NCBI RefSeq assembly: GCF_001194135.2
Contig: NC_069005.1
Span: 20,987,139 to 21,051,138 of the forward strand
Direction: 5' to 3'
DNA from: Octopus bimaculoides
Lineage: Eukaryota
DNA length: 64,000 nt
The notes under the pieces were generated by a model, which made no database searches, was not told where the DNA came from, and saw only the letters and a list, made by a program, of their open reading frames with translations. The first letter of the stretch is position 1. The number at the start of each line of letters is the position of its first letter. Positions 4,082-59,640 of the stretch are shown piece by piece. The position numbers and the translations under genes are program-made.

Positions 4082-5362
4082 CAGGTTGTTCAAAAAGTCT
4101 CTCTGCAGTGATTCTTTTTCATCCTGTGCATGCACAGCTGGACTATTACTGCATGAGTGGCCGAGCATCAGCCATTGTACCTCAGTCATTGTGTACCCTT
4201 CAGCATGTCAACATGCGAACCGTTTAAGAATATATGTTTTTAGTTGAATGATTGTTTCGAGCTGGAAACAAATACATAGAAGTTCAGTGAAACTTTTCCA
4301 AATACTGTTGTTCCATATCGTGACACTTTATGGGATTTGATAAGAAAATTTAGAAACACAGGCTCAGTGAAGACACAGCAAGAAGCGGTAGGCTTAGTGT
4401 TCTTTCAGATGAAACACTCTCCAATATTTCTGATAAACTGTTGGAAAGCCCATCAAAGTCCTTACACAAATTGTTACAGGAAACGGAAATTAGCCTAGGA
4501 AGTGCTTACATGGCAGTAAAAAAGAAATTAAATTTCTTTCCATACAAAGTGCTGGCCATTCAAGAATTGAAGACTATGGATAATGCTAAAAGGCTTCATT
4601 ATTGTTATTGGTTCCAAAACTTTGTTGCCGAAAAAGGCATAGAAGTGCTGGATGGGTGTTTTTACACTGATGAGACTTGGCTTCATCTGTCGGGACACAT
4701 AAATTCGCAAAACACAAGGTAATGGAGCACTGAGAATCCACATGCGATGCATGAGCGACTCCTGCATCCCGCAAAAGTTGGAATATGGATAGCAATTTCG
4801 AGAAAGCATATTGTGGGACCGATATTGTTTGAAGACACCATCAACACTGAGAAATATTGCTCAAATATTGTCTATCCATTTGTAGGCCAACTCAGTGAAA
4901 GTGAAATTAATAATGCATACTTTCAGCAAGATGGAGCTATAGCACATACTTTGTGCATCACTATGGCACTACCTCAAGAGATTTTCAGTGAACGGATAAT
5001 TTTGAAGGGATTTTGGCCACCAAGATCGCCTGACTTAACACCACCAGACTTTTCTTTCTGGGGAGCAAGTAAAGGATCAGTGTACAAGAATCACCCGAAA
5101 ACCATTAGTGAGCTAAAAGACACAATCATAACCTTCACACGGTCCACGCCACATCAGACTCTCCAAGATGTATTTCAAAATATTTTGTAAAAGAGTCAAC
5201 TTATGTATTGAAAAATGAAGGATGACACTTTCAACACTTCTTATAAAGTTTTTTAAAGTCTTGTAAAGTCTAATATATATTCTTTTGTAGTCTTTACACC
5301 ATCTTAAAAATATTTATTTTGCAATAAAATACTTATTGCGGAGAGACTTTTTGAACACTTTG
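4082..5362 (+). mobile_element. Full-length degenerate Tc1/mariner element, rosa-like transposase
   Basis: TA-flanked 28-bp TIRs (caggttgttcaaaaagtctctctgcagt, 23/28 match). Transposase motifs YTDETW, FQQDGA, WPPRSPDLTPPDF; in-frame TAA at 4720 and frameshifts near the 5' end. Confidence 0.92.
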
Positions 5363-27770: not shown

Positions 27771-28415
27771 GTAAGTACATTCGATATTAACACAATATTT
27801 CATTATCGGAACATTATTGAACTATCGTTTTCAAGTGTACAACCACAACTGTTGTTATCATTAACATCAGTTTCACATAATAACAATAGTAATAATAATA
27901 ATAATCCTTTCTACAATAGGTACAAGGCCTGAAATTTTATGAGAGGGGGCTAGTCGATTACATCAGACCTAGTGCTCATCTGGTACACCGGGCAGGCATT
28001 TTCTAATACTTATTTCATCGACTTGGAAAGGTGGAAGGCTAAGTCAACCTCGGCGGAATTTGAACTCAGAACGTAAAGCCAGAAAAAAATGCCCTCAAAC
28101 ATTTTGTCTGGCGTGTTAACGATTCTGTCAGCTCACCGCAAAACATTGACACAAGGCCTTTTATTTCATTATTCGAGGAGAGAGCTTTTCAGTAATCAGT
28201 TCGTGATTGCTATCGATCTGCCGGTTAGAAGAAAGGTAAAGTTGATCTAATTTTTAATTTTAAACTTCGGCAGCATGTTTAGACATAGAACAAATGTAAA
28301 GGAATAACACTGCTTGTGGTAATAATTACATGGATGAGAAAACTCAACAACGATAATTTTTTTTTTTTTTTTTTACCAAAACAAAATATTAGCAATGAGT
28401 GATATACAACCTTAC

Positions 28416-28560: not shown

Positions 28561-31500
28561 GATGTTGTAGAAACGGTAACACGCCGGACACAGCTGCGTC
28601 GTCTGACGTTTTCAAGAAATGTGCCGCGTATATTCTGTAGTTATGCCGCGCGTATTTTAAAGCGGGTCAGAAAACGCCAAAATATTGAGAAAACCAGTGC
28701 ATGTGGGCTCCTTTGTAAAGTCAAATGCGTGCTACGATTTCTGTTTTAAAACAATTTTAATGTACTTTTTTTTTTATTTATACAGTAGAAACTGCTTATT
28801 ATGATCAGTTTGAGACGAAGCCTTTTATACTATAGTATTCGGGTGATAACATTAATTATACTGAACATGTTTGGGACCTGCTAATTTTAATGTTAACTGT
28901 ATNNNNNNNNNNNNNNNNNNNNNNNNNNNNNNNNNNNNNNNNNNNNNNNNNNNNNNNNNNNNNNNNNNNNNNNNNNNNNNNNNNNNNNNNNNNNNNNNNN
29001 NNNNNNNNNNNNNNNNNNNNNNNNNNNNNNNNNNNNNNNNNNNNNNNNNNNNNNNNNNNNNNNNNNNNNNNNNNNNNNNNNNNNNNNNNNNNNNNNNNNN
29101 NNNNNNNNNNNNNNNNNNNNNNNNNNNNNNNNNNNNNNNNNNNNNNNNNNNNNNNNNNNNNNNNNNNNNNNNNNNNNNNNNNNNNNNNNNNNNNNNNNNN
29201 NNNNNNNNNNNNNNNNNNNNNNNNNNNNNNNNNNNNNNNNNNNNNNNNNNNNNNNNNNNNNNNNNNNNNNNNNNNNNNNNNNNNNNNNNNNNNNNNNNNN
29301 NNNNNNNNNNNNNNNNNNNNNNNNNNNNNNNNNNNNNNNNNNNNNNNNNNNNNNNNNNNNNNNNNNNNNNNNNNNNNNNNNNNNNNNNNNNNNNNNNNNN
29401 NNNNNNNNNNNNNNNNNNNNNNNNNNNNNNNNNNNNNNNNNNNNNNNNNNNNNNNNNNNNNNNNNNNNNNNNNNNNNNNNNNNNNNNNNNNNNNNNNNNN
29501 NNNNNNNNNNNNNNNNNNNNNNNNNNNNNNNNNNNNNNNNNNNNNNNNNNNNNNNNNNNNNNNNNNNNNNNNNNNNNNNNNNNNNNNNNNNNNNNNNNNN
29601 NNNNNNNNNNNNNNNNNNNNNNNNNNNNNNNNNNNNNNNNNNNNNNNNNNNNNNNNNNNNNNNNNNNNNNNNNNNNNNNNNNNNNNNNNNNTATATATAT
29701 ATATATATATCCAAGAAAGTTAGGGGTTGTGAATCCAACCCACTAAGGGATAATATCTATCCAATATACTGCCGGAAGAATACCCACTTATTATGACACT
29801 GGTGTTTGTTTGCAGTACACCGGGCAGGCATTTTCTGGGCTGTTTGTTGTTCGATGGTATTGTTACCCTCGCTACTCCAGTATACTCTCATCCGATCCAT
29901 GCAAGCATGGAAAAGTGAACGTTAGAACTATATATATATGTGTGTGTGTGTGTGTGCGTGCGTAACATTGATGCAAGAAATAACTGTTTACATGCACCAT
30001 AAGAACTATAAATTCCATCGCCTAACATGATAGAAATAGTACGTGGTGCGAAAGTAAAGGATGTACATTACTTGAAAACTTAAAAGGGAAGACGTTTCGG
30101 TCTCAGTACGGATACTTGATCATAGATGTTGTGTTGAGTCGGGGCTAACATGGTACTTTACACTAATAAATACCTAACAATACTTGGTTTTGTTCTCCAG
30201 CTGTAATGGGAAAAAAAATTCAGAATGACTACCAGTAATATACTGACTAAGGTTAAGTATCGACTCGGACTATTGCCGTTACTTTGTAGCCTGTGTGGCC
30301 AATAAATCATAGATGACAGAATCAAGCTTTCAGTTGAGCCGTTCTAATTCCTTTAGGTCAACTCTCGACTTCTGTTACAAATGCGGTTGAGAAAAAGCAG
30401 GAAGTCACTCAAGCATTATCCTATTGTAATTCGCTTAACCAGTTGAAAATAACAGCCAAATCTCATTCAAATTACACACTACGACCTTAAAAAAAACGAC
30501 ATGAAATACGTCAGATAGTCACGACTGGAATGCTTTTGCTCACGTGTCAGTTTGAGCAGGGCTAACTTGGGGCTAAACAACAACTTGCTCGATCTGTTAG
30601 AAATCACAGCCGAATATTCCTTAAATTGATCCCCTACTCAGGTGTGTGACGAAAGATTTCCAGACAATGGGCATAGATAAAATAAGAACAATAATAAATG
30701 AGTGGAGAACGAATATGTACAGCGTGTTTATTTGGCAAGAAAAGAAAATGACCATCTCGAAATATAACAATAATAATAAAGCTAAACTGAAGATCAAATA
30801 AATAGTGAGTGTTTAATTGGCAAAAAAATGACCATCCCCAAGTATAACAATATCTAGATTTTCTCATATTGAAAAGTAAGATTCTTGGGTCATTTTTTAA
30901 AAGGCATCCAAGGAGGATTGCTATTCTTCTGGACAGTCCCAAAGTATTGCAACGCTTTATGGGAAAACTAGTTCATATCTGACACAAGATCTTCAGAGCT
31001 GGGTGATGTGTTCTTACAGTGTCTGGTAGCTCACGCTAGAAACAAAATACATTCTTCAATTTTTCCTTTTGATTCTCTTCCTGACAGTCCAGTTCTGATG
31101 TAGCCCCTTCAGGTTGTCGTTGGATAGTTCTTTGCTCTTCAGCCAAATGATTTATGTCCTGTCCATTCACCTCAAGATCTATAGAACTAGAATAACGTAC
31201 AGTTTCCTCCTCCAGTACAGGCTCGGGTTAAAACATTTCAAATTCTATTGAATAGACAACACGCCAGAATGCTCTCCAAGAAGAGTTCACACATTTCGAG
31301 CTCACCCCATGACTTTCACTATTAAATGCACACCATCTGCAATGGTGAAGGGATTTTTTCCCCCATTTTTTTTTTTTGTTACATCAATAAAGTTTCTTCA
31401 AAGTAAATCCTGTGTATAATTTTTTAAAAAGACACAATCACTTGCTGACCGATGGGCTGTTGCGGAGGAGGAGGCGGCGGTGGCAGGAAATGGAATTTTG

Positions 31501-34260
31501 TAAAATCCATCTTCTCTGGTAGTTTGGTTCACGAAGCTGGACGGGTGTACAGGAACAAGAAGAGCCTTCATTGAGAGACTTTTCTCTTTGCGGTAGTCAT
31601 GTACAGTGGGAGCAAACATGAATGAACCACACAGCAAACAAGCTCTTCGTAACTCGGGCCTGTTTTCTTCTTCTTTTTCTTTCTCCAAAAAGGCCTGTTT
31701 CACGGTTAAAAATCTGATGAGAACAGACTACTCCCTTTCGTAATTTTATAAAATTCTGCACGATATGTTCCTGCAGCGATTGGGTCTGAACTGCTTTCTT
31801 CCTGCCTTGCGACATTGAACATCAGGATGCTTGTTAAATAAATTTGATCCAGCTATTATTGATTTCAAACTTAACTGATTTTCCGTTAATGGTAACAGGA
31901 ACATCTCTTTCAGGCCGTTCGTAAATAGACATAATTTTTTTTCACAAATGTATGAACCACTTAGCGAATCATTAAGCTAATTTTTTTTTCCTCATCATCC
32001 TTTAACGTCCGTTTTCCATGATGGCATAGGTCGGGCGGTTTGACCAGAGCGGACAAGCTGGAGAGCTGCACCAGGTTCCAGTCTGATATGGCTTGGTTTC
32101 TACTGCTAGATGCCCTTCCTAAAGCCAACACCTTTACAGCGTGCTGGGTGCTTTTAATGTGGCACCAGCACAGGGCTCTTGCAAATCAACACTCTTCATA
32201 CCAAATCATACTGTTTAAATTACGATGATGATATATATATATATATCTTCATTATCATCCTTTTTAATGTCCATTTTCCATGCTGGCAAGGGTTGGACAG
32301 TTTGACCGGAGGTGACAAGTCTGAGAGCTACACCAGGTTCCAGTCTGATTTGGCTTGGTTTCTGCGGTTAGATGCCGTTCCTAAGTTTGTGCTGGGTGCT
32401 TTTAATGTGGTACCAGCACGAGTGCTTTTATGTGGTACCCATCCACAATAATATTAGCTTTTGCCATTCCATCTGTGTGTGAGACATAAGAGCCTACGTA
32501 TGCCTTTCCACACCGTTGCGCTTACACTTATTCTTTTTCTTTGAATTATATAAATTATATTTTTGATCAATTGATGTTTCAAAATTAGTTAACTTCTTCG
32601 AAATATGTTGGGGAATATTTTAATTTTAAGAAAAATAAATCTAGCACAACACTAATTTTTCTTTGAAAAATTCTGCTTCTGTTAATGAATGACAATGCAT
32701 ATTCGAAGTTACACATATGATTAACTGAAAGCCATGTGGTTGCTTTTTGTTTATTTCCATTTTCTCTTGATACAAGATAAAAGACTGTGAACAAGGGGAA
32801 GTAATTCAGTTTGACTGTGTAGCACCTTGGGCAGGTGTCTTCTACTATATGCCAACCAAAGCGTTGGAGGACAAACACAGACTCAAATTTGTTACTTTAG
32901 CTTTTCGTTAATTATTTAATTAATTCTGGAAATCGCTCGTAGTCATGGTAATATTATTCCTTGCTGAAGTAATGGAAAAGCATACGTTAACAAAGACTTT
33001 CGTAACCAGAGTCTTCATTTTGTGTGTGTGTATGTGTGTGTGTTTAAAACTGTCTTTCTGAGTTACTTCCCCTCCCTGTATGCTCTGACAATGTCGTCTG
33101 TTGGACTTTTGGCGTCTTTCAGATGAAGCAAAGCGATAAATAGATTTTCAAATACTGGAGTTAAAGGAGTTGTTTAGCTCTCTAGACCAGCATACAGTGG
33201 GACAAATCTATGATCAATAGCGTTCCAACTTAGACAATCCCGCACTACGCTGTGTCTAGTATGCCCTTTTCTGATTTAAAATAAGTGGTGTGTGTCGTGA
33301 AAGGAGTTGTAACAGTTGTGACGTTTTTGTAGGCGAGATTGATGTGGTTAATGTCCAGCTCCGACAGCTTTCAAGAACAAAGTGGACAGAAGTATAGTGC
33401 TTATCTGGTCCAAATGCGTGCAATAATGAACTCAATGACCAATTGTTGTTTAACCCCGAGTCAACACTGTGATCAAGCATATACATTGGTAAAACATTCT
33501 TCACCTTACCATCATAAAATCAATGCATCTTTACATTTTTAAAACAGTTAAAAGTATGAAGGTGAGTAGATTTGGCTGTTATTTCTAGCAGGTTGACTTA
33601 CCACAAAATCACCTATTCCCTACCCACCAAACATGGGGATTTTTAAGGTTGTCTTTTATCTTTTACTTTTATTTGACTGCAGCCATGTTGGGATACTGCC
33701 ATGAAGGGTTTTAGTCGAACGAATTGACACCCTGGACTTACTATTTTTTTAAAAGCTTGTTACTTGTTTATTGGTCTCTTTTGCCAAACTGCTAAGTTAT
33801 AGCAACATAAACACACCCACACCAGTTGTCAAGCAGCGTTGGAGGACAAACACAGACTCAAAAACTCTTTCTCTCTCTCTCTCACACACACATGATGGGC
33901 TTCTTTCAGTTTCCATCTACCAAACCCACTCACAAGGCTTTGGTTGGCATATAGTAGAAGACACCTGCCCCAGGTGCTACACAGTCAAACTGAACCTGGG
34001 ACCATGTGGTAGGGAAGAAGGCTTCTTACCACACAGCCATGCCTGTGTATTTTGAAAACAGTAGTGTTGTATTGATTATAGGTTTACAAATTAGCTACAT
34101 TAGTTTGTGATGGCAGAAGTGGTTAGACAGTGTCAGTGAAGCTTGAACAGAATTACTATTATTCAAGGTACTTTTGTAGGAAGCATAAATTTATTAGTTT
34201 ATCTTACAAATAGTAATAGGATCATCATCAGCAGCAGCAGCAATAACAACAACAACAATA

Positions 34261-34973
34261 CTTTTTACTGAAGGTACAAGGCCTGAAATTTCAGGGGATG
34301 GGGATAGTTGACCACATCGACCCCAGTATTCAACTGGTACTTATTTTATCAACCCCGAAAGGATGAAAAGCAAAGTTGACCCTGGCAGAATTTGAACTCA
34401 GAATGTAAGGATAGATAAAATGCCACTAAATATTTGCCTGATGTGCTAATGGTTTTGTCAGCTCGCCATCTTGATGATGAGGAGGATAATAATAATAATG
34501 ATAATCCCTTCTATTATAGGCACGAGGCCTGAAATTTGTGGGGAGGGGGTAAGTTGATTACATCGACCGCAGTGCATAACTGGTACTTATTTAATCAAAA
34601 GAATGAAAAGCAAAGTTAACCTCAGTGGAATTTGAACTCAGAACGTAGCAGCTGACGAAATACCACTAAGCATTTCACCCGGTGTGCTAATGATTCTGCC
34701 AGCTCACTGCCTAAATAATAATAATAATAATAATAATTAATAATAATTGTGGTTTCAAATTTAGCCACAAAGGCAGCAATTTTGGGGAGGGGATGAGTTG
34801 ATTACATCGACCCCAATGTTCAACTGGTACTTATTTTATCAACCTTGAAAGGATGAAAGGCAGAGTTGACCTCGGTGGAATTTGAACTTAGAATGTAAAG
34901 ATGGACGAAGTGCTGCTAAGCATTTTGCCCAGTGTGCCAATGATTCTGCCAGCTCACCACCTTAATAATACTG

Positions 34974-35006
<33 letters not shown>

Positions 35007-35240
35007 GTGAAAATAATAATTCTTTCTAATTTTGGCACAAGACCAGCAATGTCAAGAGGAAAGGATTAATTGATTACATCAACCCTAGTACTCAGTTGAC
35101 ATTTATTTTATCAACCCTGGAAGGATGCAAAGTAAAGTCAGCCTTGGTGGAATTTGAACTCAGAACTGAAAAGCACCGAAAGGACACACTGCTAAGCATT
35201 GTGTTGAACATGGTAACAATTCTGCCGGCTTGCTGCCTTC
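34261..35240 (-). mobile_element. Head-to-tail array of four family B SINEs
   Basis: Copies at about 34261, 34505, 34749 and 35020, separated by (AAT)n. Confidence 0.85.
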
Positions 35241-35459
35241 AGAAAAAAAATATATATATGAATAAATAACAATGAACAGAAAGAAAAAAAAATGAAAATA
35301 GTAATAGTGAATGTTAAGAGATGAATAAAAGAACTACAATAAGATTAAGAAAGTGGAGATAATTGCTGAAGTGATGAAAGTGGGGGGAAAATAATTGACA
35401 AAGAAATGCAGGGTTAATATACTTTGTTGATATGTTAAGATATGGATTAGATAGCAGTA

Positions 35460-38089: not shown

Positions 38090-38742
38090 CCCTGTCCTTG
38101 TCTTGGCATTGCATGATAATTGTGAGTGAGTGTCGTTTTCATAGAAGCAGGGTCATCNNNNNNNNNNTCCATGCCTGCATAAGTTGGACAGTTTGACAGA
38201 AGCTAGCCAGCTTGACAGAGCTGTCCATACTCCATGTCTGTTTTGGCATGGCTTCTATAGCTGGATGCCCTTCCTAATGCCAACCACTTTACAAAGTGTA
38301 CTAAGTGCTTTTACATAGCACCAGTATGGGTGCTTTTTATATAGCACCAGCACTTACAATCCTGCAGTATTAATGATGCTCAAGTGGAGAGGGATGTAAG
38401 GGACAATCATAATTTTACTTAGTTTGACGTGTCTTTTCAAGCACAGCAAACTGCCAGGAGTCTTGGTCCCCTGTTTTCCTCTCTGTGAATCCCAGTGTTT
38501 GTAGATCCTTTCTCACCACTTCGATATTCTGTGGAAACATGCCTGGCCATGAGAAGATATTACCTTGCTTGGAAACTGATGAGGATTGATGACAGGAAGA
38601 GTATATGGATGTTGAAGATTTGCTGCAGTGAATTCCATCAAACCGATGCAAGCATGGAAAAGTGGGTCTTAAAATGATAGTGTTGGTATATTCATTTGTT
38701 TCAGTTTTATGTTTTTTCATGTTTAGATGGGTTGGCCTGCCA

Positions 38743-38986
38743 GATCTTTACCCTTTGAATGGCAGTAATTTTATTCAGCTGAATACACGTCATTGATTGG
38801 TTGAAATTACCAAAATACGACTACTTTGACACGAAATAATTTTGAAAATATAAACTTTTCTCAACAACACTAAGAGTAAAAGATGTTTTATATGACACAT
38901 TCTACCAGTGTCCGAAGTTTGAAAGTGTTTAGTTACAAAAAATTAATTTTTTGATTAAAATTACTGCCGTTCAAAGGGTAAAGATC
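38743..38986. mobile_element. MITE with about 30-bp TIRs
   Basis: gatctttaccctttgaatggcagtaatttt ... aaaattactgccgttcaaagggtaaagatc. Confidence 0.75.
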
Positions 38987-42579: not shown

Positions 42580-45500
42580 ATGCCGTTTAATTTCAAGTTA
42601 AAACGTACGAAACGTTATGAAGTATCGTCGAAGTACGAGTTTGTTGTTGGGGTGCACATGCTAGACAACTCCTACTTGGAATGTTCACTGAAAGCTGACA
42701 GTACCGGACACGATTGTCTCGGAACTATTGCCCATATGTTAAAACTGGAGGAGTTCGAATACTTTGGATTTCGTTACGTGACCAAAAAACTCCAATTCCA
42801 CTGGATTAACCTGGACAAAGCACTAAAGAAGCAGCTGGACAAACACGCTCACATTCCACGTCTCTACTTTGGTGTGATGTTTTACATATCGACTGCCCAC
42901 AGGATTGACGATAACCGAGCTCGCTACAATTATTTCCTACAACTGAAATCCGATGTGTTAGACAGTCGAATCTCATGTTCCAGCGAACAGGCCATCAGGC
43001 TGGCAGCCTACTACCTCCAGGCCGAATTGGGACACCATGATTCGGAACAGCACACAGTCGAGATGTTTAGAGACGTGCAAATTCTTCCCAAACATATGAC
43101 AAAGGACGATAGTATTACGACCGATCTGCTGCAAGATGTACTCTTTCTCCACAATAGTTTGATCGGGTTACATCCTATGGTCGCTGTCATACATTATATT
43201 AAACTGGCTCAAACCCTCGACGGATACGGTATGGAATACTACACTGCTAAGGATGATTCTGGTAAGGAATTATATTTAGGAACTTCCAACAACGGTATTT
43301 TCGCTCGTTATCTTAATGGTCAGCAAGCTTTATCTTTTCGTTGGTCTGTTGTTGCTCATATTGGCCAAAATAAAAAATGTGTTATTATCGATACCCAAAA
43401 GACTTCAATACAATATTATTTAGAAGACACAGAAATGGCTAAATATTTTCAACAAATTGCATGTCTTTTACAGAAATTTTATAAATCATTCAAACCAAAT
43501 AGCTGCAGTTTAACAGATTTAAGTGACATGGGTTCTATAAGTTCTGCTCAAGATTTCCAAGTGGCCCCCACTAACCTTCCGTTAGATTCAGTCGATCCTG
43601 CTGACCCAAACACTGCTTTATATTCTCACAGTCCAAACTATGCGATGGATATGCAGCCCGGTGTGACGAAAGAGAATTTCTGTAATACGCAACCGGGTGT
43701 TGACAGCTTCGCCCCTGACGTTGTTGCACAGCACTACGTGAACCAAACGTCAGATCCATCCCAAGTCGCTAACAATGTGTCATATCCTACACAAATCTCC
43801 GCTCCGGCGCATGTATCTCAACAACAGGACCTCACCTACCGCCAAGCCATGCTTCCGGCTTATCGCCCTAGTCCCGACTATAATCAACTAATGCGTCAAC
43901 GCATTGACAATTCGCTACAGATCAACACTTCCTCCTCCTCCCAACAGTCTCAGCCAGTTTACACAACAGCAATTACAACACCAGTTGTTCTACCACAGCA
44001 AGTAGTGACTACTTTAACCAGTTACACAGACAACATCCCTCACTATGCCAACATCATACAACAGGACTCAAGATACGTAGATTATCAATCAAATTCTTGG
44101 TATAACAATTTCATAGTGAAGCCGACACACAGTTCACCCGAGCTGAACACAGTTGCCACACAAGGAATGCCAGGTCGGGATTACATAGCTGAAGACTTCA
44201 TGCATGATAAAGTGTACTACAAACCGCCTCCTCCTCCACCATCTCCACCACCACCATATCCTCGCGTGAGCAGCAGCACACCAGACCTAGCTGCACAGAC
44301 TGTCCAAATGAACATCAATTACAGCCCAGACTTAGTCTCACGAAAGAACCTCGGTCCCATCTCTTTCGCTGTCCAATCGAAACTTGACAAAAGTTTGGAG
44401 AATCTTGCAGCGGCAGTCAATGAAGTGAGTGTCTCTGATGCTGACAGTTTGTGTAGTTGTAATTCAAACCAGACCGGCTGCAGCACCAAAGACACAGACA
44501 AAGACTTTGAAGACCAGCAAATACCAAGTGAAATTGAAAAAAACAACATCCACGTCCGTTACATTGCTCCAGAAGAGGCTCCCCCTCCTTCTAAATCTAA
44601 AGAAGTTGCCACGCTTCGAGAAAGTTTCAGGAGAATGATGATTGCACGTTCTAGTCCAGCTTGTCTTGGTCGCTTTAAAGAAAAAGCAAAAAAAAGTAGG
44701 CAAGACCAAATACGCGAAGATGATGACGATGATGTCATTGATGATGATGATGATGTTATTACCAATGTCAAAAATGATGAAAGATGTGAAAGTGCTTCGA
44801 GTAATTCATCTTCATTGCTGCAACAGAACAAGGACTCCGACGGGGAAGCTGCTGTAGTTGTACCTGCAGGTCAGGCTGTAGCAGAGAGTGTTCAAACTAA
44901 CAAAACTGAACTAACGACTGATCGAGGGACGGAGCTTCAAAACAACGAAAACCATGATGATGATGTGATGAAACATCAGAACATTGGCCCTTTAAAAATG
45001 GCTGCTATGAATGGATTAACCCTCTCTCGTCCCATAATTTTATCAGCAAGTGAAGATGAGATTCGAGCTCCAAAAGATGAGAGACGTAAGATGCTTGAGG
45101 GTAAAGTTTCGGAAGGATGTGTTCTTGCAGAATTTGAACAAATTGCCAAGAAGGCACCGAACATGGAATGTAGCATTGGTCAGAAGCCAGAAAATGAATC
45201 TAAAAATCGGTTTCCAGATGTCCTACCTTATGATGAGACACGTGTGGAATTATCAGTCACTAAAAATAATGTTCATGGTTATATAAATGCCTCTCACATG
45301 AAGGTGAATCTTGGAGTATTGGAATGGTCATTCATTGCAACTCAGGCCCCACTTGAGAACACAGCTCAAGATTTTTGGCAAATGATTTGGGAACAAGAGA
45401 TAGATGTAATAGCCATGTTAACTGGCATCAAAGAACAAGGAAAACAAAAATGTTACCCATATTGGCCCCAGGAACCAGGCTCTGATCACAAACTTCGGTT

Positions 45501-45954
45501 TGGCCGATATGAAATTGAATTACAATTCAGTAACAATTCCTGGTGTTATTTCACAAACCGTATTTCCATTAAAGAGAGGTCTACTGGAACAGAACGACTA
45601 GTGTGGCACCTGCAGTACACTGACTGGCCAGATCATGGATGTCCAGAGGATACTTATGGATTCCTTGGCTACTTGGATGAAGTTGAATCAGTGCAACGTC
45701 TAGCTGAAAGTGAAGAAGGTAGTGGAAAAAAGTCCCCTATCGTTGTGCACTGCAGTGCTGGTGTTGGACGGACTGGTGTGGTTTTACTATCAATTATAAT
45801 GAAATCCTGTTTGGAACACAACCTTAATGTTGATATTCCTCTTGTACTGGCCAGACTACGCCAGCAACGGATGTACACTGTCCAGACACTTGGACAATAC
45901 AGCTTCGTCTACAAAACTTTGATTCGTTACTTGAAAAATACTCGGCTTATTTAG
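42580..45954 (+). CDS. PTPN14: FERM-domain non-receptor tyrosine phosphatase, PTPN14/PTPN21 (Pez) orthologue; intronless CDS, 1124 aa
   Basis: N-terminus MPFNFKLKRTKRY (human MPFGLKLRRTRRY); FERM domain; linker motifs PAYRPSPDY, PPPPYPRVSSSTPDLA, SPDLVSRK; PTP motifs KNRFPDVLPYD, DFWQMIWEQ, WPDHG, VHCSAGVGRTG, QRMYTVQT; C-terminus TRLI. Equally related to PTPN21. Confidence 0.97.
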   Translation: MPFNFKLKRTKRYEVSSKYEFVVGVHMLDNSYLECSLKADSTGHDCLGTIAHMLKLEEFEYFGFRYVTKKLQFHWINLDKALKKQLDKHAHIPRLYFGVMFYISTAHRIDDNRARYNYFLQLKSDVLDSRISCSSEQAIRLAAYYLQAELGHHDSEQHTVEMFRDVQILPKHMTKDDSITTDLLQDVLFLHNSLIGLHPMVAVIHYIKLAQTLDGYGMEYYTAKDDSGKELYLGTSNNGIFARYLNGQQALSFRWSVVAHIGQNKKCVIIDTQKTSIQYYLEDTEMAKYFQQIACLLQKFYKSFKPNSCSLTDLSDMGSISSAQDFQVAPTNLPLDSVDPADPNTALYSHSPNYAMDMQPGVTKENFCNTQPGVDSFAPDVVAQHYVNQTSDPSQVANNVSYPTQISAPAHVSQQQDLTYRQAMLPAYRPSPDYNQLMRQRIDNSLQINTSSSSQQSQPVYTTAITTPVVLPQQVVTTLTSYTDNIPHYANIIQQDSRYVDYQSNSWYNNFIVKPTHSSPELNTVATQGMPGRDYIAEDFMHDKVYYKPPPPPPSPPPPYPRVSSSTPDLAAQTVQMNINYSPDLVSRKNLGPISFAVQSKLDKSLENLAAAVNEVSVSDADSLCSCNSNQTGCSTKDTDKDFEDQQIPSEIEKNNIHVRYIAPEEAPPPSKSKEVATLRESFRRMMIARSSPACLGRFKEKAKKSRQDQIREDDDDDVIDDDDDVITNVKNDERCESASSNSSSLLQQNKDSDGEAAVVVPAGQAVAESVQTNKTELTTDRGTELQNNENHDDDVMKHQNIGPLKMAAMNGLTLSRPIILSASEDEIRAPKDERRKMLEGKVSEGCVLAEFEQIAKKAPNMECSIGQKPENESKNRFPDVLPYDETRVELSVTKNNVHGYINASHMKVNLGVLEWSFIATQAPLENTAQDFWQMIWEQEIDVIAMLTGIKEQGKQKCYPYWPQEPGSDHKLRFGRYEIELQFSNNSWCYFTNRISIKERSTGTERLVWHLQYTDWPDHGCPEDTYGFLGYLDEVESVQRLAESEEGSGKKSPIVVHCSAGVGRTGVVLLSIIMKSCLEHNLNVDIPLVLARLRQQRMYTVQTLGQYSFVYKTLIRYLKNTRLI

Positions 45955-57352: not shown

Positions 57353-57844
57353 CGTATATCTGTATATGTGTGTTTGAATATATCACAACATTGACCAGCC
57401 TGTCAGATGTTGTTATACACCACATGTCACAATACACTTCCTTATATTGATGTACCGTTTGAATGATACCTCCCCCTCTGGCTAGGTGGGCAAGACAGCA
57501 TTCACTCTGACTGGAATGCCAGTCTGTTGCAAGGTTACACATTTACATCTGAGTGAACTGGGGCAAAATGAAATGGAATGTTTTGCTCAAGAGTATATCT
57601 AAGTATTGAAACCACATTTTTGTGATCGTGAGTGCAACACCCTAACCACAAGGTCATGTGCCCTCACATATTTGTGTGTGTATGTGCATATGTGTATATA
57701 TGCATCTATCTGTATGTATGTTTGTATGTATATTTTTGTCTGCTTGTTGTCATCTGATTGTTTCTATATCAATGTTTGTCTTATATTCTGTTTGTGTGTG
57801 TGTGTATATATATATATATGTGTGTGTATTTGTATATATACTCT

Positions 57845-58489: not shown

Positions 58490-59640
58490 TGCATAGGCAT
58501 GAAGAAAGGTAGGTCTGGTAAGACAGTCGAAATGCTAGAAAGGAGGCATATAAATCTGGAGGGGAGTCTCAGCCAGAATTCTCACAAGCAAAGAACAAAG
58601 GTACAAATTCTTCTGGGTAGGCAGTAGTGATGTGTGGGTGGAAGTGTACATAGTTTTGACCGAGAAATTGGTAGCTGAAGTGATTGAGGTAGCCAGAACA
58701 TCTAAGTATTGAAACCACATTTTTGTGATCGTGAGTGCAACACCCTAACCACATGGTCATGTGCCCTCACATATTTGTGTGTGTATGTGCATATGTGTAT
58801 ATATGCATCATCATGGAAAATTTAACAGTAGCATGATCCTCAATCAGGACTTGAAGATAAACAAAAGGACCAATTTTATGAAGCCTTTTTGCAGATTATG
58901 AATGACAATGACCTTATCTTGTGGGTGACATTAATAGATATGTTGGGCTGCACTGGTATGCATTTGATGGTATACACAAAGACTACAGATTTGGTTCTAG
59001 AAAAGAGGAGGGAACAAAGTTGTTGGAGTTATGTGATTCAAATGACCAAATGATCTGTGATACTGACCTTAGGAAACCAGCCAGTCACTTGATCACTCGT
59101 CAATCTGATGGGCATACAAACCAGATTGACTATATCCTCACCTGAAAACAGGAGAGACAGATGACTGTAAATGCAAAGTCCTACCCTGGTGAAGAATGTA
59201 TAACCAAACATAGGTTAGTGGTTGCTGACTTCAGACATAGAGCTAGAAGGATTCGGAGGCATAAACCAGTATGGAATAGGAAGATATGGAAGAAGCTTCA
59301 ACCAGAGAATTATGTCAGGGAAGCCAGGTGACAGTTTTATTTAGCAATGGGAGAATTATTATTTTTTATATTATGGCTGGGTTCCAACCTATGCCGCAGC
59401 AACAAAATGCAGAAAGTAAGAGCTCTGCCAATATTCTACAGCTTGAGAACTCCAAGCATCAGGTGTTCCAGATTGCAAGACAGTTTATTAAAGAAACTCA
59501 AGGCATGGGAGAAAAGTGTGCACAGATGGATAATAATGGCACACTTGCTTTTGGTGATTCTGAAGAAGTGCTAAAGCAAGTGTAATGTCATTCATATAAG
59601 TTAGCCAATGCTGAAAGATAATCATTAGAGTACATGGAAA
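58490..59640 (+). mobile_element. RTE LINE AP-endonuclease region, degenerate, with a 110-nt insertion
   Basis: GMKKGRSG, YKFFWVGS, GDINRYVG, EGTKLLELCDSN, HTNQIDYILT, KSYPGEECITKHRLVVADF. Confidence 0.85.

Follow-up and report, generated by a model that had tools for sequence, protein, structure and literature searches.

We analysed a 64-kb stretch of the Octopus bimaculoides genome (assembly GCA_001194135.2, CM046625.1), hereafter the window, in which an intron of ELP4/PAXNEB, a gene on the plus strand, carries a composite insert of 83 bases at positions 32805 to 32887. The insert is made up of two pieces of one SINE copy, one of them inverted and the other direct. We call these pieces A′ and B′ and their templates A and B. 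The templates lie 948 to 1189 bases downstream of the insert, and all window coordinates are collected in Table 1. On CM046625.1 the insert occupies 21,019,943-21,020,025, and the templates fall within 21,020,973-21,021,132. Also nested in an ELP4/PAXNEB intron is an uninterrupted open reading frame of 1124 aa (42580 to 45954, plus strand) that combines FERM and tyrosine-phosphatase sequences and is PTPN14/21-like. It is conserved in Octopus vulgaris (1127 aa, same 90% cluster), and outside Octopus the closest proteins share 65% identity with it and belong to a cluster in which a protein of the cuttlefish Acanthosepion pharaonis is also found. It could be a retrogene, or a gene with a single exon.

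Table 1. Coordinates of the composite insert, its templates, and neighbouring candidate patches (window positions)
Feature	Position	Strand	Description
Template SINE	33651..34055 (about)	-	Full-length tRNA-derived octopus SINE; head-to-tail alignment with other window copies
Template of piece A′	33937..33994	+	
Template of piece B′	33835..33862	+	Ends ~6 bases short of the SINE-internal (CT)n(CA)n run
Sole A/A′ mismatch	33971 (template) vs 32828 (insert)		In SINE sense, template G; insert and all other window copies T
Piece A′	32805..32862	+	Inverted copy of 33937-33994, 57/58; SINE sense on the + strand
Piece A′ shared marks			Template's TTG, T, A, G, T and A substitutions and 6-7 base deletion
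Piece B′	32860..32887	+	Direct copy of 33835-33862, 28/28; SINE antisense on the + strand
A′/B′ junction microhomology AGC	32860..32862		Read directly in the sequence
A′/B′ imperfect overlap	32860-32866		AGCGTTG (B template) vs AGCCTTG (A template), 6/7; mismatch at 32863
Possible third patch AGGGGAAGTAA	32794..32804	+	Reverse complement of 33063-33073
Possible fourth patch AAGATAAAAGAC	32774..32785	+	Reverse complement of 33651-33662, the template SINE's 3′ tail

An initial annotation of this DNA had described the insert as an inverted match of 57 in 58 bases followed by a direct, exact match of 28 bases, with an AGC shared by both. The coordinates and identities stood up to our reading of the sequence and to a repeat finder, which reported the match of A′ as 32805-32866 versus 33933-33994 inverted (60/62). 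The AGC overlap was also present, and it widens to six of seven bases if one mismatch is permitted. By our own calculation, P(m) = (m + 1)(1/4)^m(3/4)^2, an overlap of at least 3 bases would arise at a random junction with a probability of about 0.05. The outer junctions show no microhomology as assembled, the scoring there being dependent on the preinsertion sequence.

Homology to the SINE stops sharply at both ends of the insert, and the flanks are unique within the 64-kb window, which therefore offers no paralogous empty site. Read directly, the insert has neither the SINE head nor the SINE 3′ tail, and the flanking sequences (gaagtaa and tttgtta) have no common repeat that could stand for a target-site duplication. 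Only two internal stretches of the SINE are spanned, roughly SINE positions 60 to 120 and 195 to 220. Since the 3′ tail, the head, and the target-site duplication are all missing, these features argue against retrotransposition as the origin of the insert. Relative to the SINE, the insert joins part of the 5′ third, in sense orientation, to an antisense segment that lies just beyond the (CT)n(CA)n run. Both template stretches lie within one 160-base span, and the ~75 bases between them were skipped.

To place the insert among its relatives, we compared it with the other SINE copies of the window. A sensitive search with the template recovered about 17 copies or fragments of this old family, 64 to 75% identical to the template. 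For piece A, identity to the insert is 60 to 78% among the 14 other copies of the window and 97% for the template; for piece B, ten other copies match it at 12 to 71%, compared with 100% for the template. A multiple alignment and a comparison with the consensus of the window copies showed that the template of piece A departs from that consensus by nine substitutions and a deletion of 6 to 7 bases. The insert has the deletion and all nine substitutions but one, and in piece B it has the template's cctccaacgct and tttgagtc variants. The private deletion and substitutions of the template occur in none of the 14 other SINE copies of the window. A rough binomial estimate of our own, made at the best rival identities of 0.78 and 0.71 per site, puts the joint chance of matches of 57/58 and 28/28 at ~1e-9.

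Among the window copies surveyed, the insert thus appears to derive from one old neighbouring copy and not from the family master. The variants of the copy at 33.7 to 34.0 kb, which the initial annotation had called private, are indeed so among the SINE copies of the window, as judged from the alignment and the consensus. Its further claim, that the insert is not an independent SINE insertion, is borne out within the 64 kb by the unique flanks, by the lack of a head, a tail, and a target-site duplication, and by the private changes. A self-comparison of the whole window (≥94% identity, ≥20 bases) returned no other SINE-derived pair of this kind. The diagnostic 26-mer GTCTTCTACTATATGCCAACCAAAGC had no match in metagenome contigs, where a SINE-consensus control had none either, so this search was without power. 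The 94-aa open reading frame of the template had words in common with only four proteins, none of which scored, in a search that was without power on octopus SINEs. Equally without power was a search of the protein collection with a 922-aa concatenation of open frames from 32430-33660, which gave no match.

We then used O. vulgaris to date the template and its copy. The orthologous O. vulgaris locus (L002, 23 kb, on OX597838.1) begins at window position 33524, ~720 bp downstream of the insert site. It aligns to window positions 33524-33832 at 90.4%, with further blocks at 86 to 91%. With an O. vulgaris ortholog for its 3′ half, the template SINE was in place before the two species split, an event dated at 13 to 33 million years (PMC13282606). 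The insert differs from the template at 1 of 83 sites, whereas the interspecies divergence is ~9.5%. A copy as old as the split would be expected to show about 7.9 differences, and the Poisson probability of at most one is 0.003. Given this disparity, the copy appears to be much younger than the template, and the two are evidently not sibling insertions. The one mismatch also bears on the template's later history: because the insert keeps the family-consensus T where the template has G, the template base at 33971 changed after it was copied.

O. vulgaris is without the sequence from window position 33833 to ~34240 (relative to L002 position 307), that is, the 5′ half of the template and ~190 bases beyond it, and the missing part includes both template stretches. 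The left break of this absence (after 33832) lies within 3 bases of the start of template B (33835). This proximity is probably a coincidence, as four piece boundaries are available for such a match, which gives a chance of roughly 7%.

Taken as a whole, we consider it likely that the 83 bases were genuinely inserted in the germline of the O. bimaculoides lineage, as a local DNA copy that arose by two-step, microhomology-guided templated insertion and was not retrotransposed. The competing explanation that concerns the data themselves is an artefact of assembly or gap closure, in which reads of the SINE 1 kb away were misplaced and stitched into the contig. The assembly, which is Illumina-based, is rich in gaps (13 N runs in the 64-kb window), and gap closures that leave no visible trace are conceivable. 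True artefacts do occur in the window, as exact duplications at two 10-N gaps (8599-8647/8658-8706 and 40335-40358/40369-40392) that represent unmerged contig overlaps, and the 1.0 to 1.8 kb that separates each of three local copies in the window from its source could mirror a library insert size. However, these artefacts abut the gaps and are 100% identical, whereas the N runs nearest to the insert, one ending at 29691 and the other beginning at 38158, are 3.1 and 5.3 kb from it. Furthermore, the insert is not identical to its source and has the ancestral base at the mismatch; it therefore has a history of its own, which disfavours a chimera. Errors of k-mer graphs or of gap walking are not known to join oppositely oriented pieces by a 3-base overlap, and we regard an artefact as unlikely. 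A biological rival, an independent insertion of a rearranged SINE from a young subfamily with the template's variants, draws on the facts that SINEs are plentiful in this genome and that LINE-driven inversions are known. Twin priming, the LINE-mediated 5′ inversion of retrocopies reportedly described by Ostertag and Kazazian in 2001, would be one route, and it resembles the insert in placing adjacent pieces of one retroelement in opposite orientations with microhomology at the joint. Its products, however, begin with an inverted part upstream and continue with a direct part that extends to the tail, whereas the insert has the reverse order of pieces, no 3′ end or tail, no target-site duplication, and a match to an old neighbour and not to an active master. 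Moreover, although the template is older than the species split, 1 of 83 sites distinguishes it from the insert, and none of the 14 window copies has the variants. That an independent SINE should come to lie no more than 1.1 kb from its nearest relative, when the genome measures ~2.3 Gb (PMC10925132), would also be a remarkable coincidence, and we consider an independent insertion to be the least probable of the explanations weighed here.

The two remaining rivals accept a local origin and differ from templated insertion in two steps by the route. The reverse complement of the insert reads as the reverse complement of 33862..33835 followed by 33937..33994, which is exactly the right junction of an allele with the 102 bases of 33835-33936 inverted between the 7-base inverted repeats AGCGTTG and CAAGGCT, and the insert might hence be a single inverted copy of 83 bases from such an allele. 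That route takes two events and an unseen allele, the assembled template is not inverted, and the inversion would itself need the same strand switch, which together make it quite improbable. Marginally less probable again is a larger duplication of the SINE region that was trimmed by deletions and an inversion, or a gene conversion that overwrote an older, rearranged SINE fragment. Either would account for the origin of both pieces from one 160-base template span close by on the same chromosome. A direct or inverted duplication of 33835-33994, however, cannot give the reverse complement of A followed by B without an inversion, so that at least three events would have to fit within the time of one substitution. 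Gene conversion, for its part, should have left diverged SINE sequence beside the insert, yet the flanks are unique.

For local templated insertion, the preferred reading, the sequence shows the local origin of the copy, its two pieces from opposite strands, the microhomology at their joint, and the greater age of the template; we infer the initiating lesion, the order of the steps, and the enzyme. A free 3′ end at ~32804/32888, at a double-strand break or on a nascent strand leaving a stalled fork, would prime on one strand of the SINE ~1.1 kb downstream, and 58 bases would be copied from it (33994 down to 33937). After release, the strand would re-anneal via AGC (6/7 with gTTG/cTTG) to the complementary strand ~100 bases further on. 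There, 25 to 28 more bases would be copied (33835-33862), with synthesis halting just before the SINE-internal (CT)n(CA)n run, and the strand would return and be sealed. The reverse order, with B copied before A, would yield an identical product.

As for the class of event, the initial annotation had named polymerase-theta end joining or an MMBIR-type process. The two pieces taken from opposite strands of one template and joined by microhomology support this class, within which the sequence gives no choice between enzymes. Such a structure is characteristic of nascent 3′ ends that are primed and extended, detach, and are then primed a second time. We lean modestly towards a replication-type switch (MMBIR/FoSTeS-like) because both template strands were used, because the pieces measure 58 and 28 bases, and because ~1 kb separates the insert from the template; polymerase-theta end joining would hold a sizeable minority share of the probability. 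Most probably, the insert is an ordinary scar left behind by error-prone repair or replication of DNA. The mutation is of a known kind, seen here in an organism that is new for it.

Some other routes were considered and dropped. The idea that a template hairpin provoked the switch was abandoned when the DNA fold of 33825-34000 proved no better than that of shuffled sequences (z = 0.18). The geometry rules out snap-back or self-primed cDNA or DNA, as a fold-back copies only sequence that has already been made, and piece A is situated past the point of the switch. Repair templated by RNA, whether ELP4 pre-mRNA or a SINE transcript, would be no simpler, as templates of opposite sense would be required for the two pieces.

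To relate the insert to known systems, we compared it with MMBIR-type templated insertions (MMB-TI), polymerase-theta end joining (TMEJ), and short template switches. Germline MMB-TI use up to five templates and have a mean microhomology of 3.7 bp, or 5.1 to 5.5 bp when scored as microhomeology with one mismatch (Osia et al. 2021, PMC8421209). Like these, the insert is short and comes from a nearby template, has its main piece inverted, and suggests consecutive template switches; its 3-base microhomology at the internal junction is extended by mismatch-tolerant microhomeology, and MMB-TI likewise accumulate as germline variants over evolution (PMC8421209). The nearby template on the same chromosome that is expected of MMB-TI is found here (57/58 and 28/28, with other copies at no more than 78%). 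Unlike MMB-TI, one of the pieces is direct, and the template is 0.95 to 1.19 kb away, beyond the ≤100 bp searched by MMBSearch, a limit that is a property of the search tool and not of the mechanism (PMC8421209). This is also a cephalopod event, seen in a fixed or assembled state and not as a called variant.

The patches of TMEJ are mostly 2 to 35 bp long and can come from many kilobases away (PMC7454005). These patches are described as arising in cis or in trans, sometimes at a distance of kilobases, as would be the case here (PMC7165422; PMC7454005, which cites Schimmel et al. 2019). TMEJ synthesis also begins and stops at microhomology, with repeated priming and release (PMC7454005). The insert is unlike TMEJ products in that its pieces are 58 and 28 bases long, so that A′ (58 bases) falls outside the 2- to 35-bp range (PMC7454005) and B′ (25 to 28 bases) inside it, and in that both strands of an intact duplex were used, which goes beyond what resected ends alone offer. 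The event would be a clean and datable multi-step template switch, with a template that was fixed before a species split and copied after it and with an internal junction that can be read to the base. Short template-switch mutations, reportedly described by Loytynoja and Goldman in 2017, are said to arise when the nascent strand moves to the complementary strand and back, giving inverted local copies. In contrast to the insert, whose product is 1 kb from its template, those mutations replace sequence in place within tens of bases.

Two short, exact inverted matches to the left of the insert, both within 40 bases of it, are suggestive of further templated patches, and we offer them as a lead only. 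The candidate third patch ends exactly at the left junction, and after one mismatch its match resumes with TCAG, the first bases of A′. Shuffles of the flank give P values of 0.01 to 0.04 for these left-flank patches, to be read beside the 4.6% of random window positions that have a match of at least 11 bases within 1.5 kb, a figure that bears on both.

The initial annotation had named two more candidates in the same 64 kb, and at least two further short local copies do exist (112/114 and 22/22). Positions 58700-58812 copy 57597-57710 at 112 of 114 bases, in direct orientation and 1.1 kb apart, with an ATC at the right end that may be microhomology. The source at 57597-57710 consists of the head of a different tRNA-like SINE and a TG-rich, non-SINE flank; because the copied stretch includes this flank, we read the pair as a local copy at the DNA level and not as a product of retrotransposition. 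Positions 27983-28004 are identical to 29815-29836 (22/22, direct), a GC-rich sequence (GTACACCGGGCAGGCATTTTCT) with unrelated flanks; these copies are 1.8 kb apart, and an N gap ends 124 bases from the second. The remaining short pairs of the window have ordinary origins, such as gap-flanking overlaps and terminal inverted repeats. A scan for short pairs in the 23-kb O. vulgaris locus gave an output dominated by microsatellites.

Three events (83, 114, and 22 bases) in ~61 kb raise the idea that kilobase-range templated patching is unusually frequent in the octopus germline, which we consider unlikely. The count is suggestive, but every one of the three is 1.0 to 1.8 kb from its source and the assembly is a short-read one, so a technical cause has to be excluded first. 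If the rate were typical, there would be tens of thousands of such patches genome-wide, and if the other two copies are real, octopus genomes may be good for measuring the rate of these events and the distance between template and break. Interest in this would rise only if a genome-wide count from long reads showed the process to be common.

Within the ELP4 intron, A′ and A form a near-perfect inverted repeat of 58 to 62 bp, whose two arms are predicted to form a long and nearly flawless stem. The stem would be a by-product with no evident function, and the scar would by itself probably be neutral. If such patching is indeed frequent, its inverted products would be near-perfect intronic inverted repeats that pair far better than ordinary SINE pairs and could seed long double-stranded RNA in pre-mRNAs. 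Octopus is known for heavy ADAR editing.

Several other elements were noted along the window. Positions 38743-38986 hold an insert of ~245 bases with terminal inverted repeats of 35 bases (33/35), and the O. vulgaris site (L002 ~4905-4925) is empty and reads ggcctgcctaatggaaa through; this is probably a small, nonautonomous DNA transposon that was inserted after the split. At 4087-5357, inverted repeats of 21 bases (20/21) surround an open reading frame of 147 aa (4747-5190), which had no Pfam match at an E value of ≤0.001. Its motif (WPPRSPDLTPPDFSFWG) is reminiscent of Tc1/mariner transposases. A tandem array at 34240-35360 repeats with a period of ~245 bases; its SINE-like unit opens with a run of the (TAA)n type, and the O. 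vulgaris array (L002 306-1130) is made up of fewer units. In the O. vulgaris locus, positions 5223-5265 and 5431-5473 of L002 form a direct duplication of 43 bases (93%) of SINE sequence around an element inserted in that SINE, a length that is unusual for a target-site duplication.
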